The position numbers and the translations under genes are program-made. The notes under the pieces are model-generated. The model was not told the origin of the DNA. It worked only from the letters and a program-made list of their open reading frames with translations, and did not search any database. A stretch of 63,865 bases of DNA, the filler included, from Reticulomyxa filosa (lineage: Eukaryota; Protista; Foraminifera), in NCBI GenBank assembly GCA_000512085.1. It is 15 parts of 15 records of this genome, joined end to end, with 100 filler letters (N's around TTAATTAATTAA, not from the genome) between each part and the next. Parts side by side here need not be neighbours in the genome. Positions count along the whole stretch, not along the records: positions 19,682 to 26,346 come from ASPP01022833.1; 14 more parts are not named here. The stretch is one strand, 5' to 3'. The stretch's first letter is position 1. Each line of letters opens with the position of its first letter. Below are positions 19,682-26,346 of this stretch, one piece after another.

Positions 19682-19871
19682 CTCCTGAATTGAATCCAGT
19701 AGAGCGTTTGTGGCGCTATTTAAAATCACATATCATTAGAAATAAAGTTTATGAAATAATCCAAGCTTTAGAAGAAGCTGTTTGTACTTTTATTAGACAG
19801 ATAACCAAAGAACAACTTAAAAATCTTTGTTCGGTTAGCTATTTACTAATTTAACTGCGGGAAATGGTATA
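19682..19871 (+). mobile_element. IS630-family transposase C-terminus and right end
   Basis: The frame from 19684 reads PELNPVERLWRYLKSHIIRNK...LLI* (stop 19852-19854), containing the IS630 SPELNPIE.W motif. It is followed by ...GAAATGGTATA ending in TA. Confidence 0.85.
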
Positions 19872-19915
19872 ACTACCTATTGGTAAAGACTCTCCTAAAT
19901 TTAAACGACATTTGC

Positions 19916-20542
19916 TTACCTTCCACCTGACACTTTCGCTAACATTGCATCAATATAGGTGGCCATGGATGGGTCTACCACTCTTGCTACTAAAAATTCC
20001 TTTTCCCACAGATCGTACTTGCCTTGCTTTAAATACATTACGCCAAGGTTAAAGTGAGCAAGCCCGTACTCAGGATCTAGTTCTATCGCTTTTTTATATT
20101 CATACTCTGCCAGAGCTAAGTTGCCTTGTTCATAATGTACTATGCCAAGCTCATTGTGAGTTTTTGCATCGTTAGATTCTAATTCTGCAGCTTTTTTACA
20201 TGCCTCTGATGCTAGAGCATGCTTACCTTGTTTATCATATAGCGTGCAAAGGTTATAGTAAGCAGTTATATATTTAGGATCTGTCTCTATAACTTTTTTG
20301 AACTGTTGTTCTGCCAGAGTTAAGTTGCCTTGCTTTAGATATATTACGCCAAGGTAACGGTGAGCAAGCAAATTGCCGTCCTGCTCTATCGCTTTTTTAT
20401 ATTCATACTCTGCCAGAGCTAAATTGCCTTCGCTTTGATATTTATTTCCCAGCACTATACGGTCAAAAGCACTTTCAGTTGCTACTGCCGTAGATATAAA
20501 GCTCAAAAATTTAGTAGCAATACCAGTTCTTTGTACATACAT
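19916..20542 (-). CDS. Tetratricopeptide-repeat protein (bacterial)
   Basis: About five 34-aa TPR units (AH..LG..Y..QG.L..AE..YKKAIE.DP). Confidence 0.9.
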   Translation of the reverse strand: MYVQRTGIATKFLSFISTAVATESAFDRIVLGNKYQSEGNLALAEYEYKKAIEQDGNLLAHRYLGVIYLKQGNLTLAEQQFKKVIETDPKYITAYYNLCTLYDKQGKHALASEACKKAAELESNDAKTHNELGIVHYEQGNLALAEYEYKKAIELDPEYGLAHFNLGVMYLKQGKYDLWEKEFLVARVVDPSMATYIDAMLAKVSGGR

Positions 20543-20662
20543 TCTTTTATAGCGTCTATTTTAAAATTGTTAATACAGGTTCTAAGTCTTGGCTTTGTTG
20601 CATGATACTTTACAATAACAGACTTCTTTCCAAACTCAACAAGAAATATTAAGGTAATAATG

Positions 20663-21333
20663 GGTTCTATCGCAAAATTAAAATGGACGAGGGACGGCCG
20701 TTGTTTTTAGGCATGACTATCCTACTAAAGCATAAAACTGCTCCATTGGAGATATTTTCCTTTTAAAAGATTTTGCCCTTTGCGTATCATATGGTATAGC
20801 TCAATGCTGGCAAGAGTGGCTCGGGCACTGATGAAATTTTTAAATCCTAGCATAGGCTTGACAATTCGCTTTAACCATCGATGATCCTGCTCAATCCCGT
20901 TGTTTAGATATTTAACCTGACGTATTTCGATCCTCTGATCTTCAGGCAAAGCCTCGTTAATCTTGAGTAAACCTGCTAAATTTGCTCCGCTCTTATCTAT
21001 ATTTACTTTCTCGGGCTTGCCGTTATTCTCAATTGCCTTCTCAAAAAACGCTTTGGCTGCCATTGCATCTCGAATTGGAGATAAGAAAAAATCAATGGTT
21101 TGGTTTTCTTTATCAACTGCACGGTAGTAATATACCCATTGACCTTTGATTTTAATATATGTCTCATCCATCCTCCAACTTTTCCCCACTGGTTTCTTCG
21201 TTTGTCTAAATTTAGCTTTAAGCTTTGGTGAATACTTTATTACCCAGCGGTTTACCGTCGCATGATCTATTTGGACTCCACGCTCTTCCATTAGTTCTTC
21301 CACAGGCTCTGTCGCAAAATTGAATTTTGTCAT
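20663..21333 (-). mobile_element. IS6-family element with N-terminally truncated transposase
   Basis: IDHATVNRWV, SWRMDETYIKIKGQW.Y.YRAVD, KYLNNGIEQDHR. Terminal IR GGTTCTATCGCAAAATT at 20663-20679. The native N-terminus is absent. The usual ..EQFYAL.. C-terminus lies in another frame (indel in the A-run near 20757). Confidence 0.9.
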
Positions 21334-21413
21334 AATTTAGCTTTCTGTAAGGCCCATAAATCCATTGGAAAATTTTGATAAATTTGATTATATTTGAACT
21401 TTGCGACAGAACC
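21305..21413. mobile_element. 109-bp non-coding mini-element bounded by IS6-type inverted repeats (MITE-like)
   Basis: GGCTCTGTCGCAAAATT at 21305-21321 and its near-inverse AACTTTGCGACAGAACC at 21397-21413 (15/17 match). No target-site duplication is visible. Confidence 0.75.
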
Positions 21414-21423
21414 TAGAAAAATC

Positions 21424-22091
21424 CTACCTATCTTTAGGTAAAGACTCTCCTTTGTTTTTAAATGCTTTTATTTTAATCGATATTTCTCTCGAGCTGTCTA
21501 TCCCCACTGCCAATGTTGAAATACCTTCTTTTTCTCCCGCTTCTTTAAACATTTCAATCAATGCTTTATCATTAGCTTCCGAGGTTGAGAACAGAATACC
21601 TACTTTGTTAGCATTAGGTATAATATTTTTTAACAAACTTAAACAATGCTTTTAACATCTTGTTTATCTGAACTTCCAGTTATATTTTTGCCAGCATTAT
21701 TATAATTTTCTAATAATTTTGCTTCAACAGGATCAATTATAGCAGCAAATATTATTGGATTTTCCTTAAACACACGTTTTGCTGCTTGAGCTACTGGGGT
21801 AGAAATCGCAATAACTAAATCAGGTTTACTAGCTTTTATTCTGCTAAGCATATTAGGAATTTGCATCTGATCAAAATTAACATTCAAATCCAGATACTCG
21901 ATTTGCTTATCGTATCCTAAAGCTGACATTTCTTTTTTAAATCCACTTATAGTTGCCTCTAAGGAAGCATGTGGACCATAATTTGCAATGCCAATTACAA
22001 TATTTTTAGCAATTCCACAATTTAGAATTACTGATAAGCAACTAACTATTAAAGTATGTATAAATATTTTGTGAAATTTTAAGATAGACAT
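21424..22091 (-). pseudogene. ABC transporter substrate-binding protein (ABC_sub_bind, TrpX-like aromatic amino acid type), frameshifted and 3' truncated
   Basis: GIANYGPHASL, KPDLVIAISTPVAQA, PIIFAAIIDPV, NITGSSD, then KVGILFSTSEAND in another frame (shift near 21637). Homology stops after IKAFKNK at ~21451. Confidence 0.8.
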
Positions 22092-22141
22092 AATAAATCT
22101 CGATTATTTTATTGATAAAGCTTAACTGATTAGGCAATTAA

Positions 22142-22189
22142 CTAACGCCACCAGCATTCTTTAAGCAATAAAGTAAAAGTAAGATTCAT
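22142..22189 (-). promoter_or_regulatory. Putative TrpL-like leader peptide MNLTFTLLLKECWWR*
   Basis: ATG AAT CTT ACT TTT ACT TTA TTG CTT AAA GAA TGC TGG TGG CGT TAG. Tandem Trp codons, an AAGAG purine tract upstream, and a stop 50 nt before the SBP start codon. Confidence 0.7.
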
Positions 22190-22216
22190 TAGTATCTCTT
22201 ATGATTTGTATAGTTA

Positions 22217-22225
22217 ATTATAGCA
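22217..22225 (-). promoter_or_regulatory. Extended -10 sigma70 promoter (TGCTATAAT)
   Basis: Perfect TGnTATAAT about 28 nt upstream of the leader ATG, in the lpxC-SBP intergenic region. Confidence 0.6.
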
Positions 22226-22272
22226 TATATTTTTATACTATGAAAGCTTAGAAAGTTTAAATAACGATTAAA

Positions 22273-23154
22273 TTAAGCCGCGGCTAATCGTTTGCTTGGA
22301 TCGATGAGAACATAAGCACTGGGATTTGAAAATAACTTTCTCAAAATCTTGTTATTCATAGCGTGCCCCCCTTTAAAGGATTTAACTCTACCTTGTAAAC
22401 GTGCTCCAGCAAGATAAAGATCTCCTATACAATCTAGCACTTTATGCCTAACGAATTCATCTGCATAACGGAGACCATCTTTATTAACTACCCCTTCTTC
22501 GTCAAGACCGATTGAATTCTCTAATGAAACACCTTTGCCAAGACCAATTTTATGCAATAAGTCTAAATCTTTAATAAAACCAAAGGTTCTAGCTTTACTA
22601 ATATCTTTTTCAAAACATGTTTGATTTTCGCTAAAAATAAAATTTTGTTCCCCAATAACTTTATTATCAAAAGATATTTTGCAATCAATTGTGAATGAAT
22701 CATCAGGCACTATTTCAATACGTTTATCTTCTATTTCAATTTCTATAGGTTTTACAACTTTGATGACCTTTCTATAATCGTTTTGGCTTATCGTTCCCAC
22801 TTGTTCAATTAATGAAACAAAAGTAAAGGAACTTCCATCCATAACTGGTACTTCACCCGCATCAACTTCTATCAGAGCATTATCTATCCTACGACCCCAA
22901 AGCGCTGACATCAAATGTTCAACCGTTGAAACTTTAGCCCCATGCTTATTACCAATTACAGTACAAAGCGTGGTTTCAACAACGTTATCACAAAGAGCAG
23001 GAATTAAATTATCCTTTTCAAGATCGACTCTTTTAAAAATAATACCATGGTTAGCCTTAGCCGGTATAATCTTTAAATTAACCGTATTGCCGCTATGGAC
23101 ACCAGTACCCTGAATTTCAATAGGTTTAGCAATTGTCTGTTGATGCCCAAACAT
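22273..23154 (-). CDS. lpxC: UDP-3-O-acyl-N-acetylglucosamine deacetylase
   Basis: QQTI, GTGVHSG, TVEHLMSAL, EVPVMDGSS, ARTFGF, LRYADEFVRHKVLDCIGDL and GGHAMN motifs. Confidence 0.97.
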   Translation of the reverse strand: MFGHQQTIAKPIEIQGTGVHSGNTVNLKIIPAKANHGIIFKRVDLEKDNLIPALCDNVVETTLCTVIGNKHGAKVSTVEHLMSALWGRRIDNALIEVDAGEVPVMDGSSFTFVSLIEQVGTISQNDYRKVIKVVKPIEIEIEDKRIEIVPDDSFTIDCKISFDNKVIGEQNFIFSENQTCFEKDISKARTFGFIKDLDLLHKIGLGKGVSLENSIGLDEEGVVNKDGLRYADEFVRHKVLDCIGDLYLAGARLQGRVKSFKGGHAMNNKILRKLFSNPSAYVLIDPSKRLAAA

Positions 23155-23363
23155 TTTGATAACTTAATAAATTACTCGAACTTAATAATACTACAAAACC
23201 ATGAATTAGACATAATTACATATTATTGCAAAATTTTACAATCCGTCTAGATACCTTATTTGTCGCAAGCGCATATGATACCAATCAATATAGCGATAAA
23301 TCCATTTATTTTAAGCATAACTTCTGTTATAAGTAACTGTAGAATAAGAATTAAGAGCTATTT

Positions 23364-23981
23364 ATAACGATTAAATATCACATTAATGACTTGCCTAATG
23401 ATGTTAAGCTTGAAGGTGATTTAGCGATAGATACTGAAGCTATGGGGCTGAATCATCATAGAGATAGGCTTTGTGTAGTTCAAATATGCGATAATAATAA
23501 AAACGCCCATGTTATTCATTTTCCTAACAAAATATACGATTGTTCTAATTTAAAAAGAATTTTGCAGGACGAATCGCGAATAAAAATTTTTCACTATGCT
23601 CGTTTTGACTTAGCCATTATACAATATTACCTCAACATTGAATTACAAAACATTTTTTGTACCAAAACTGCTTCTCGGTTAGCAAGAACCTACACTGATC
23701 AACATAGTTTAAAAGAATTATGCGCTGAATTATTAGGGGTGAGAATATCCAAGCAACAACAAACTTCTGATTGGGGCGCAATAAAATTGACTCCAGAACA
23801 AGTTGATTACGCTGCTTCTGATGTGCTTTATTTGCATGAACTAAAACATAAACTGCTTGAAATGCTTTCTCGAGAAGGAAGGCTTGAAATAACTAATAAA
23901 TGCAATGAATTCTTACCAACTAGGGCAAAACTTGATTTAATGGGATGGGCTGAAATTGATATTTTTGCTCACTCATCCTAA
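23364..23981 (+). CDS. rnd: RNase D-like DEDDy 3'-5' exonuclease (alphaproteobacterial short form)
   Basis: AIDTEAMGL, DRLCVVQ, KIFHYARFD, TYTDQHSLK, SKQQQTSDWG, YAASDV. An in-frame extension ITIKYHINDLP starts at ATA 23364. Confidence 0.9.
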   Translation: MTIKYHINDLPNDVKLEGDLAIDTEAMGLNHHRDRLCVVQICDNNKNAHVIHFPNKIYDCSNLKRILQDESRIKIFHYARFDLAIIQYYLNIELQNIFCTKTASRLARTYTDQHSLKELCAELLGVRISKQQQTSDWGAIKLTPEQVDYAASDVLYLHELKHKLLEMLSREGRLEITNKCNEFLPTRAKLDLMGWAEIDIFAHSS

Positions 23982-23986
23982 TTTGT

Positions 23987-25101
23987 TCAAGATTCGTAAC
24001 AACCGACTACTTTATCTGCCAAATATTTACTAGAATATTTAGTAACCGCTATCTCTCTTGCCTGTTTCCCCATTTTAACTCTTAAATCCTTATTTAAAGC
24101 TAATCTATACATTACTTTAGCTAAACTCTCAACATCACCAACTTTGACTAGCAATCCATTAGACTCATCTTTTACTAGATCTCTGCCTCCTGGTGCATCA
24201 GTAGTAATTATTGGCCTTCCGTAGGCAGCTGCTTCTAATAAGCTTCTACTTAAGCCTTCGCGATAAGAAGGTAGAACAGCTACATGCGCTTGTTCCCATA
24301 TTTCTCTTATATTTTTAACATATCCAACATACTTCACTATACTATGCTTATCCCAAGCTTTTAATTGCTCTTCTTTAAATGATCTTGAATATTTTCATCA
24401 GGTGCACCAACCAGCCAAAACTCTGCAAACAATCCATTCTTATTTAATAAATTAGCTGCGGTTACAAATTCACCTACTCCCTTATCAACTATCATTCTTC
24501 CTACTAAGGCAAAGATAATTTTTCCTGGTAATTCATGTAAAAATTTAAAGTTATCAGGTTCGATTCCAACGCTGCATTGATTAACAATTCGATCCTTTGA
24601 AGCAATTCTTAGATTCCTTAGCAATTCAGCATCATCTTTATTTTGAGTGATATAGATATATTTTTTATTTATTGAAACTAACTTAAGAATATTACAAATA
24701 AAAAATCGAATTACTTTTACCCATATTTTCTCGCTTAAAAATATAAAACCCATACCTAAAAAAGTATTAACTACTCTTTCTGTTTTACTAAATAATAATG
24801 CTATGCTTCCATATATAATAGGCTTAATACCAAAATGCTGAACAATATTTGGCTTCTCGCGACGATAAATACCTATGAGATTGAAAATTAACTTTAATTC
24901 TTTAAATGGATTTAAGCAAAACCTGCTGATATCTATAGTTAAAACTTTAAATCCCTGTTCTTCGACTTTAGTTTTATAACCACCTTCTTTAGTCAATACT
25001 TCTACAATATACCCTTTTTCCTTAGCGGATCGAGCTATAGGAAGAAGGTGTTCATAAAAATGCCCATCTTCTGCTACAAATAAAATTACTTTTTTACTCA
25101 T
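23987..25101 (-). CDS. GT4-family glycosyltransferase (CapM-like), split by one indel near 24390
   Basis: N-half KPIIYGS...GRMIVDKGVGEF..AA; C-half VLPSYREGLSRSLLEAAAYGRPIITTDAPG. The alternative frame SRSFKEEQLKAWDKHSIVKYVG bridges the halves. Confidence 0.85.
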
Positions 25102-25221
25102 GATATTAATTAAGCAATAATTATTAAAATGTTAGACTACAAAGTTTTATTTCGCAAGCAGCTAAACAGTATAGATTGCTTTCAGCATTATAAACAGATA
25201 TATTGCTAGTAAAAATTTTAT

Positions 25222-26124
25222 ATGGCACATTATCTAGTTACAGGTGGCGCTGGATTTATTGGTTCACATTTAGTTGATTTCCTAATCAAGCAAGGCCATA
25301 AAGTAAGAGTTATAGATAACCTCAGTTTTGGTAAGGAAAAAAATTTAAATCCGCATTGTGAATTTATCAATGCAGATATATTGGACTATAAGAATTTAGA
25401 AAAATGCTTCGATCAAATAGATGGCTGTTTCCATTTAGCAGCGATTGCTTCTGTACAATATTCTATCGCTAATTGGATTGAATCTAATCAAGTGAACCTT
25501 TTAGGTACTATAAAAGTTTTCAAATCAGCTGCTACATATAAAACACCTATTGTATACGCTTCTTCAGCCGCTGTATACGGTAATCAAACCAATACCATAT
25601 TATCTGAAGAATTACTACCAAATCCTGTTTCACCATATGCAGCTGACAAATATGCTTGTGAATTACAAGCTAAAGCATTTAACGCAGTACATGGTTTAAA
25701 ATCGACAGGTTTAAGATTTTTTAACGTTTATGGCCCTCGACAAAGCACTGATTCAGCTTATTCTGGTGTCATCTCTGCGTTTTATCATCGCATAAAAAAC
25801 AATTTGCCTATAGATATTTATGGAGATGGTATGCAATCTCGAGATTTTATACATGTGGATGATGTCGTTAGGTTAATTTCAAAAGCAATGGAATTAACTA
25901 CAAACAATTATGTTGATGTCATTAATATTTGCACTGGTATAGGAACTTCCATTAATCACATCGCACAAACTATGTTCAAAATATTTGGGCAAGTTAAAAT
26001 TAATTATAACCCTGCCAGAAAAGGAGAAGCAAAAATCTCAATCGGAAGTAATGCTAAATTATTGAATCAATTCAAATTATCTCCAACGATAGAACTACAG
26101 AATGGATTACAAAATTTGGATTAA
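25222..26124 (+). CDS. NAD-dependent sugar epimerase/dehydratase (GalE/WbpP-like SDR)
   Basis: TGGAGFIGSH, HLAA, YASSAAVYG, PYAADK (YxxxK), LRFFNVYGPRQ, GDGMQSRDF. Confidence 0.93.
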   Translation: MAHYLVTGGAGFIGSHLVDFLIKQGHKVRVIDNLSFGKEKNLNPHCEFINADILDYKNLEKCFDQIDGCFHLAAIASVQYSIANWIESNQVNLLGTIKVFKSAATYKTPIVYASSAAVYGNQTNTILSEELLPNPVSPYAADKYACELQAKAFNAVHGLKSTGLRFFNVYGPRQSTDSAYSGVISAFYHRIKNNLPIDIYGDGMQSRDFIHVDDVVRLISKAMELTTNNYVDVINICTGIGTSINHIAQTMFKIFGQVKINYNPARKGEAKISIGSNAKLLNQFKLSPTIELQNGLQNLD

Positions 26125-26237
26125 GACTTCCATTTAATCGAACAACCAATACTTGGAAATTGTTCTCCCTTAAACATAGGGGATTGCTAACATTTAGATA
26201 CATGTTATACTAGGAGAGCAACTAGTATGGAGTGATA

Positions 26238-26346
26238 ATGCATTGCAGGTTTTGTAATTCAGAAAAATATGTCAGGCATGGTTTAACAAGAGGTAAACAA
26301 AAGTTTTTATGCAAAAACTGCAATAAGCACTTTGTAGTTGATTTAG
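26238..26346 (+). mobile_element. N-terminal zinc ribbon of an IS1/IS1595-like transposase, cut by contig end
   Basis: MHCRFCNSEKYVRHGLTRGKQKFLCKNCNKHF matches C..C.S...V..G...GKQ...CK.C...F. Confidence 0.7.

Follow-up and report, generated by a model that had tools for sequence, protein, structure and literature searches.

Organization of the leader locus

The window, by which we mean the whole stretch of joined DNA that was analyzed (63,865 nt, along which all coordinates run), contains at positions 19,682 to 26,346 a 6.7-kb piece that is the entire contig ASPP01022833.1 of the Reticulomyxa filosa assembly GCA_000512085.1, an accession to which papers on foraminifera refer. R. filosa sequencing data have been reported to contain a symbiont of the Midichloriaceae (Rickettsiales) (PMC10847448), and from the assembly accession together with this literature we infer that ASPP01022833.1 comes from that Rickettsiales symbiont. 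A search of public sequencing runs for the stretch returned only marginal word matches (one synthetic metagenome).

As listed in Table 1, the minus strand of ASPP01022833.1 carries a short upstream open reading frame (uORF) with two adjacent Trp codons near its end, followed by a gene for a TrpX-like ABC substrate-binding protein (SBP). The elements named in the preliminary description, namely an extended -10, a purine tract, a 15-codon ORF ending C-W-W-R-stop, a 50-nt gap, and a TrpX-like SBP gene, are all present as described. The purine tract may be the Shine-Dalgarno (SD) sequence of the uORF, a possible function judged from its composition and position. A strict uORF pattern (M, 10 to 13 residues, W.{0,2}W, ≤4 residues, stop) searched on both strands of the 6.7-kb piece had a single match, the leader uORF itself.

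That description had also pointed out that a clear GC hairpin followed by a U-tract is missing, and this was borne out: a consensus scan detected no intrinsic terminator in 21300..22700, and a looser scan found no hairpin with a U-run at the leader. Furthermore, comparison of the window with the Rfam leader models gave no match at E values up to 1, and 20 related loci gave none at gathering score. The spacer sequence TTAGTTAA has some likeness to a TrpR operator, but this reading was dropped, as the match is partial and lies in AT-rich sequence.

TABLE 1 Features of the ASPP01022833.1 leader locus and positions of second uORFs in related loci
Feature	Position	Strand	Remarks
lpxC, gene upstream of leader	22273..23154		
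Sigma-70-type promoter	22217..22244	-	10/12 consensus matches, TG present
-35 element, TTCATA	22244..22239	-	Followed by 16-nt spacer to extended -10
Extended -10, TG-c-TATAAT	22225..22217	-	End lies 27 nt 5' of uORF ATG
Purine tract, AAGAGA (candidate SD of uORF)	22200..22195	-	End lies 5 nt 5' of uORF ATG; sequence read
Long imperfect hairpin over whole leader	22086..22197	-	Predicted; dG -31.3 kcal/mol, z -4.8, 0/200 shuffles as stable
Leader uORF, 15 codons plus stop, MNLTFTLLLKECWWR	22189..22142	-	ATG at 22189; 5' arm of hairpin
Tandem Trp codons TGG TGG, codons 13-14	22153..22148	-	Presumed stall site; near hairpin apex
uORF stop codon, TAG	22144..22142	-	
50-nt spacer, uORF stop to SBP ATG	22141..22092	-	3' arm of hairpin; sequence read and fold
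SD-like GAGA of SBP gene, inside spacer	22101..22098	-	
TrpX-like SBP gene, N-terminal piece, 150 aa	22091..21639	-	Premature stop; PF04392 positions 2-118, E 9e-22
SBP gene, second piece, 70 aa, other frame	21636..21424	-	PF04392 positions 124-187
IS6-type terminal inverted repeat, GGTTCTGTCGCAAA	21413..21400	-	End of SBP remnant
Second, facing IS6-type repeat, GGCTCTGTCGCAAA	21305..21322	+	Sequence read
IS6/IS240-family DDE transposase ORF	20725..21333	-	PF13610, E 6e-40
Second uORF (long-spacer class)	L015:2003-2089, L016:2663-2749, L029:3333-3440, L056:3762-3857, L006:402-473, L019:2777-2839		

The SBP gene is truncated at an IS6-type repeat

The SBP gene is broken, a point absent from the first description of the locus. 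Its two pieces match PF04392 (ABC_sub_bind) with 78 bits and 39.6 bits (gathering cut-off, 25.9), and the frame changes between them near 21640, within a short T-run. An intact relative of 326 residues aligns at residues 19 to 148 and 151 to 215 only; homology stops near 21451, and the counterpart of residues about 216 to 326, i.e., the C-terminal third, is missing. The frameshift could be a sequencing error, whereas the C-terminal truncation cannot be. The transposase ORF sits where the rest of the transporter operon would be, and no match to an ATPase or permease gene was found anywhere in the 6.7-kb piece. With an SBP gene that is both frameshifted and cut by an IS6-type element, and with no other transporter genes at the locus, the leader copy in ASPP01022833.1 is most likely a relic ahead of a dead gene. 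For the same reasons, the original proposal that this bacterium actively controls its Trp scavenging is not supported. In the R. filosa assembly, a sensor would thus have outlived its transporter, which fits ongoing gene decay and expansion of insertion sequences in the symbiont.

The terminal repeat GGTTCTGTCGCAAA resembles the end of IS26, and compared with the IS26 Tnp the transposase ORF presumably is without its normal N terminus. No more than some 109 bp are enclosed by the two facing repeats, which recalls a miniature element, and the adjacent transposase ORF begins with codons that run through one of the repeats. A family-4 glycosyltransferase gene on the minus strand is likewise split (Glyco_trans_4_2 at 24361..25101 and the Glycos_transf_1 part at 23987..24337); this second broken gene of the piece is consistent with either gene decay or assembly indel errors. 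By eye, the contig ends with short ORFs that look like transposase fragments [19690-19854 (+) and 26232-26346 (+)], one resembling the C-terminal end of a DDE transposase and the other a Cys-rich N terminus that is interrupted where the contig stops. The assembly was probably broken at these ends by repeats.

Trp-codon leaders recur upstream of related SBP genes

The preliminary description had suggested searching for a conserved WW uORF upstream of related SBP genes. A total of 82 related SBP loci (numbered L001 etc.) were collected, 2 from a one-genome-per-species scan and 80 from a metagenome scan with SBP alignment. The first two distant relatives, whose SBPs are 48% and 37% identical, already have uORFs that end in ...RWRWRNAAA-stop and ...RWRWRL-stop. 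A scripted filter for ATG ORFs of 10 to 45 codons with W..W among the last residues, applied to 450 nt of sequence preceding each SBP start, was positive in 27 of 77 loci, compared to a mean of 0.36 (maximum, 4) in dinucleotide shuffles and 1 on the reverse complement; the outcome of the suggested search was therefore positive. The 27 loci represent 24 distinct peptides with the typical end W-R-W-R(-N)-stop. Five members missed by the filter were found by eye (L001, L005, L031, L058, and L009), and in L005, L031, and L058 the leader frame continues towards the SBP start. In all, about 32 of the 82 loci have a uORF of 15 to 22 codons with 2 to 3 Trp codons just before the stop. When the strict pattern was run over 0.98 Mb of related loci on both strands, 25 of its 30 matches fell within 450 nt upstream of an SBP gene.

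The geometry of these leaders is regular. Of 30 leaders, 24 have their first Trp at codon 13 or 14, with 36 to 39 nt from the ATG to the first UGG; no in-frame stop precedes the Trp codons, which number 2 to 3, lie ≤4 codons apart, and are followed by the stop after 0 to 4 codons. The ASPP01022833.1 uORF fits, with 15 codons, W13 and W14, one more codon, and the stop, and its peptide (..ECWWR) is among the more divergent members of the family. The promoters of related leaders have a perfect TTGACA in 16 of 30 cases, and the end of the -10 hexamer lies mostly 27 to 40 nt before the uORF ATG.

The SBPs were also placed in a quick maximum-likelihood tree built with IQ-TREE, where a split with an SH-aLRT support of 99 separates a clade in which 34 of 37 members have the leader from a sister clade in which none of 31 does. 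The ASPP01022833.1 SBP falls within the leader clade, on a long branch and with only 45% of the columns filled. Taken by sequence, the 15-codon uORF is not a chance ORF, and these comparisons strongly support its assignment to a conserved family of Trp-codon leaders of TrpX-like importers.

The leader of L009 (1024-1044) is almost identical to that of L007 (2716-2772), except that the AAA run preceding its Trp codons is one A shorter. Its ATG is thus out of frame with the Trp codons, through either natural inactivation or a sequencing error.

Predicted fold of the leader RNA

The preliminary description saw only weak GGCG/TGCC pairing in the leader. The whole ASPP01022833.1 leader is predicted to fold into one long imperfect hairpin (Table 1). 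In this fold, the uORF start region pairs with the GAGA/AUG region of the SBP gene, the apex lies just past the Trp and stop codons, and 10 of the 13 SD-window bases are paired to the 5' part of the uORF.

We grouped as a short class the 18 leaders with 49 to 69 nt from the uORF stop to the SBP start, among them ASPP01022833.1 (50 nt). The minimum-energy fold of all 18 is a single long hairpin with the uORF in the 5' arm, the apex a little past the Trp and stop codons, and a 3' arm that reaches the SBP start; relative to dinucleotide shuffles, the z score averages -3.7. Of the 13 SD-window bases, a mean of 9.4 are paired with the 5' part of the uORF, versus 2.4 in shuffles.

As MAFFT aligned only the ends of the 18 short leaders, we instead compared cognate with noncognate arms and ran RNAalifold on a subfamily. 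Duplexes of cognate arms average -27.4 kcal/mol versus -15.2 for noncognate arms, and none of 20,000 permutations was as good (P < 5e-5). Although the arms vary widely in sequence from locus to locus, the best partner of every 5' arm is the 3' arm of the same leader. For ASPP01022833.1, the arms score -24.3 with each other and a mean of -12.2 with the arms of other leaders, so that its own pairing ranks 1 of 18. RNAalifold recovered the lower stem, uORF codons 1 to 6 against the SD region, with four compensatory pairs.

A second uORF in the long-spacer class

A long class comprises 12 loci in which 147 to 231 nt separate the first uORF from the SBP gene, and all of them contain a second uORF of 14 to 35 codons. 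It usually ends in W-P-x-G-Q(-x)-stop and overlaps a TGGCC-N4-GGCCA palindrome, and the first hairpin ends at its start. Beyond the examples in Table 1, similar second uORFs are found in L001, L013, L017, L027, L042, and L063, and this type occurs alone, without the first, in L010, L036, and L079.

The 10 to 14 bases directly 5' of the Trp codon of the second uORF pair with the SD of the SBP gene (cognate, -12.2, vs -8.0 kcal/mol; P < 5e-5), which independently supports a translational output in the family. A ribosome stalled at the Trp codon of the second uORF would cover this anti-SD directly. The second uORF is possibly a second-stage leader peptide, and the two would then form a two-stage relay.

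Link to tryptophan supply

The sole NCBIfam match of these SBPs is NF041285 (TrpX, tryptophan ABC substrate-binding protein), with 82 bits for the ASPP01022833.1 piece and 179 bits for the intact L004 relative. The equivalog cut-off is 390 bits, and by these scores the SBPs are relatives of TrpX and not equivalogs. Sequence relatives with solved structures are 3lkv, 6hni, and 3lft.

Related operons encode the SBP, an ATPase, and a permease, and six add kynureninase (kynU). The transporter genes are followed by kynU and trpD in L005 (6551-8346), L019 (5403-7351), L029 (6117-7956), and L056 (6467-8351) and by kynU without trpD in L041 (6415-7794), while in L001 (4894-7845) kynU, trpD, and trpC come directly after the SBP gene. 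The presence of kynureninase, trpD, and trpC in some of these operons ties the leader to tryptophan supply, and the gene content suggests that the kynU-bearing loci are operons for salvage from kynurenine to tryptophan. Given the kynU linkage, the transported compound could be tryptophan or kynurenine; with either putative ligand, the operon would serve tryptophan supply.

Proposed mechanism and alternatives

Translational attenuation is the best-supported reading, because the scanned interval has no terminator and the uORF:SD hairpin is conserved and co-varying. The same two findings fit the translational part of the earlier suggestion that the output is either Rho-dependent or translational. 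We consider it likely, on the basis of sequence and folding, that the Trp-codon leader is a ribosome-mediated Trp sensor that acts through an SD-masking hairpin and that persists in ASPP01022833.1 as a relic. Transcription would start about 20 nt 5' of the uORF. By default, the 3' arm would bury the SD and start codon of the SBP gene, and the SBP would be poorly translated. When charged tRNA-Trp is scarce, a ribosome would stall at codons 13 to 14, near the apex, and presumably hold the hairpin open; the conserved spacing would probably leave room for a second ribosome over the anti-SD at the start of the uORF. The ribosome-binding site of the SBP gene would then be free and the importer made. 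With plentiful Trp, the ribosome would terminate two codons on and leave, and the hairpin would close again. In this scheme, the leader anatomy, its conservation, the co-variation of the arms, and the gene content of the operons are observed, whereas stalling, the direction of the response, and the second ribosome are predictions.

In RNAfold calculations, masking one ribosome at the Trp codons changed the unpaired probability of the SD from 0.33 to 0.35, and masking a second, queued ribosome raised it to 0.50. Since a single masked ribosome barely opens the SD, folding alone does not support a version with one ribosome. The 36 to 39 nt from AUG to Trp would be about the minimum for a second ribosome on the anti-SD. 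It is possible, though short of probable, that these leaders form an undescribed and widespread class of Trp sensors in AT-rich Proteobacteria, including symbiont-like lineages, in which Trp at codons 13 to 14 would control the translation, and not the transcription, of genes for a TrpX-like importer and for salvage of kynurenine to tryptophan by opening the SD-masking hairpin. Such sensors would use the 36 to 39 nt to park a second ribosome and include a derived two-stage relay with W-P-x-G-Q.

Other outputs of the Trp codons were weighed against this. In transcription attenuation, an upper hairpin and a U-run would act as an intrinsic terminator, and a ribosome stalled on the Trp codons would block the hairpin and cause readthrough. 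A hairpin of -6 to -13 kcal/mol that abuts a U-run and has the Trp codons in its 5' arm is indeed seen in about 7 of 18 short and 8 of 12 long leaders (e.g., L035, L023, L007, L001, L029, and L056), but ASPP01022833.1 and nine other short-class leaders have none, no separate antiterminator/terminator pair of the trpL type is visible, and within the long hairpin the U-runs are also paired, their partners being A-rich Lys/Asn codons in the uORF. In addition, a ribosome waiting at the stop, 1 to 4 codons past Trp, would mask the same arm, and discrimination would need fast release. We therefore regard transcription attenuation as unlikely, although termination may contribute in part of the family, given that about 15 of 30 leaders have a hairpin with a U-run. 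Less room is left for Rho-dependent polarity, in which, as in systems of the tnaC type, translation of the uORF or stalling on it would govern whether Rho loads onto the leader. The lack of an intrinsic terminator in the interval scanned would suit it, but the spacer is only 50 to 70 nt long, A/U-rich and C-poor, and largely base-paired, neither property favoring a rut site, and the conserved SD pairing would go unexplained; we judge it very improbable.

Two further readings concern what is recognized in the leader. In nascent-peptide arrest, the W-R-W-R end would act in the ribosome tunnel, in a TnaC- or SecM-like manner, and sense free tryptophan or another ligand instead of tRNA charging. 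Most members do have Arg (CGN, with the third base varying) after the Trp residues, and peptide length is tightly conserved. However, the near-invariant residues are Trp only, those that follow vary (R, C, S, Q, H, F, and Y), the N-terminal parts of the peptides follow the pairing needs of the hairpin, and an operon for import and salvage would hardly be expected to respond to excess Trp by induction, which makes arrest of this kind quite improbable. Finally, the conserved element could be an RNA structure or a protein-binding site with an incidental frame, or the ASPP01022833.1 uORF could have arisen by chance. The hairpin by itself is strongly conserved, and a protein might in principle recognize the UGGCG repeats. 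On the other side, the reading frame is conserved, 24 of 30 leaders having an ATG 36 to 39 nt ahead of the first UGG, and 27 loci were observed where shuffles gave 0.36; we give this explanation very little weight.

Comparison with known leader systems

To our knowledge, nearly all described cases of amino-acid sensing by leader peptides, a textbook mechanism, are biosynthetic operons controlled by transcription attenuation. In Escherichia coli, the short leader ORF trpL (Rfam family Trp_leader) has adjacent Trp codons and then Arg near its stop, with the first Trp at codon 10, and a stalled ribosome provides the signal for the trp operon attenuator. The leaders described here are like trpL in having Trp codons near the end of a short ORF, Arg after them, and a position 5' of a tryptophan-supply operon. 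Unlike trpL, ASPP01022833.1 is without a terminator/antiterminator pair or U-tract, and a single hairpin buries the downstream SD; moreover, the first Trp is codon 13 or 14, and the regulated genes would be those for an importer and salvage, not trpE.

In ermC, cat-86, and cmlA, a hairpin has the leader ORF on its 5' side and the SD of the regulated gene on its 3' side, and a stall caused by an antibiotic together with a specific nascent peptide unmasks it. The leaders share with ermC and cat an SD sequestered by leader-ORF sequence, here with co-variation. They differ from ermC, cat-86, and cmlA in that the stall would presumably be caused by starvation for a single amino acid and in that the anti-SD lies at the uORF start, about 30 nt behind the presumed stall site. 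The leader peptide of rtpA, rtpLP, is also encoded by a short ORF with Trp codons; there, the SD is close by and is blocked by the ribosome that terminates on the leader, and a long hairpin sequestering the SD is not known to take part. Translation of anti-TRAP (AT) in Bacillus subtilis is induced by uncharged tRNA-Trp (PMC4027176, citing Chen and Yanofsky, Mol Cell 2004). A Trp-codon leader ORF and translation initiation of the next gene as the predicted target are common to rtpLP and the present family. In contrast to rtpLP, the stop lies 50 to 70 nt from the SD, masking would be by a co-varying hairpin, and the phyla and genes are others.

TrpX has been studied experimentally as a component of tryptophan uptake in Streptococcus suis, where it is T-box regulated (PMC9382623). 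The SBPs belong to a homologous family, and in both cases the genes are those of an ABC importer, which in S. suis is induced by a shortage of charged tRNA-Trp (PMC9382623). There, the T-box, a riboswitch, binds uncharged tRNA directly, whereas here a translated Trp-codon leader would take its place. We found the leader undescribed in the literature on leader peptides, tryptophan ABC transporters, trpX, and kynureninase operons, in which subscription literature was partly covered and an earlier description is possible; the leader family is apparently undescribed.

Across about 35 independent loci, Trp codons appear to gate translation of uptake and salvage genes through SD masking, with a very regular geometry. 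The family offers a handle on how a shortage of Trp is sensed by bacteria that scavenge Trp or kynurenine, many of which probably live in association with hosts, on which genes to annotate as a Trp and kynurenine salvage regulon, and on whether queued ribosomes (disomes) serve as a regulatory device.

In three loci (L004:439-3446, L007:1-2351, and L011:1-1378, minus strand), the leader and transporter operon adjoins a divergent 23S rRNA gene, and in L004 a 5S rRNA gene is present as well. This rRNA-gene neighborhood, conserved in L004, L007, and L011, could help classify these organisms.
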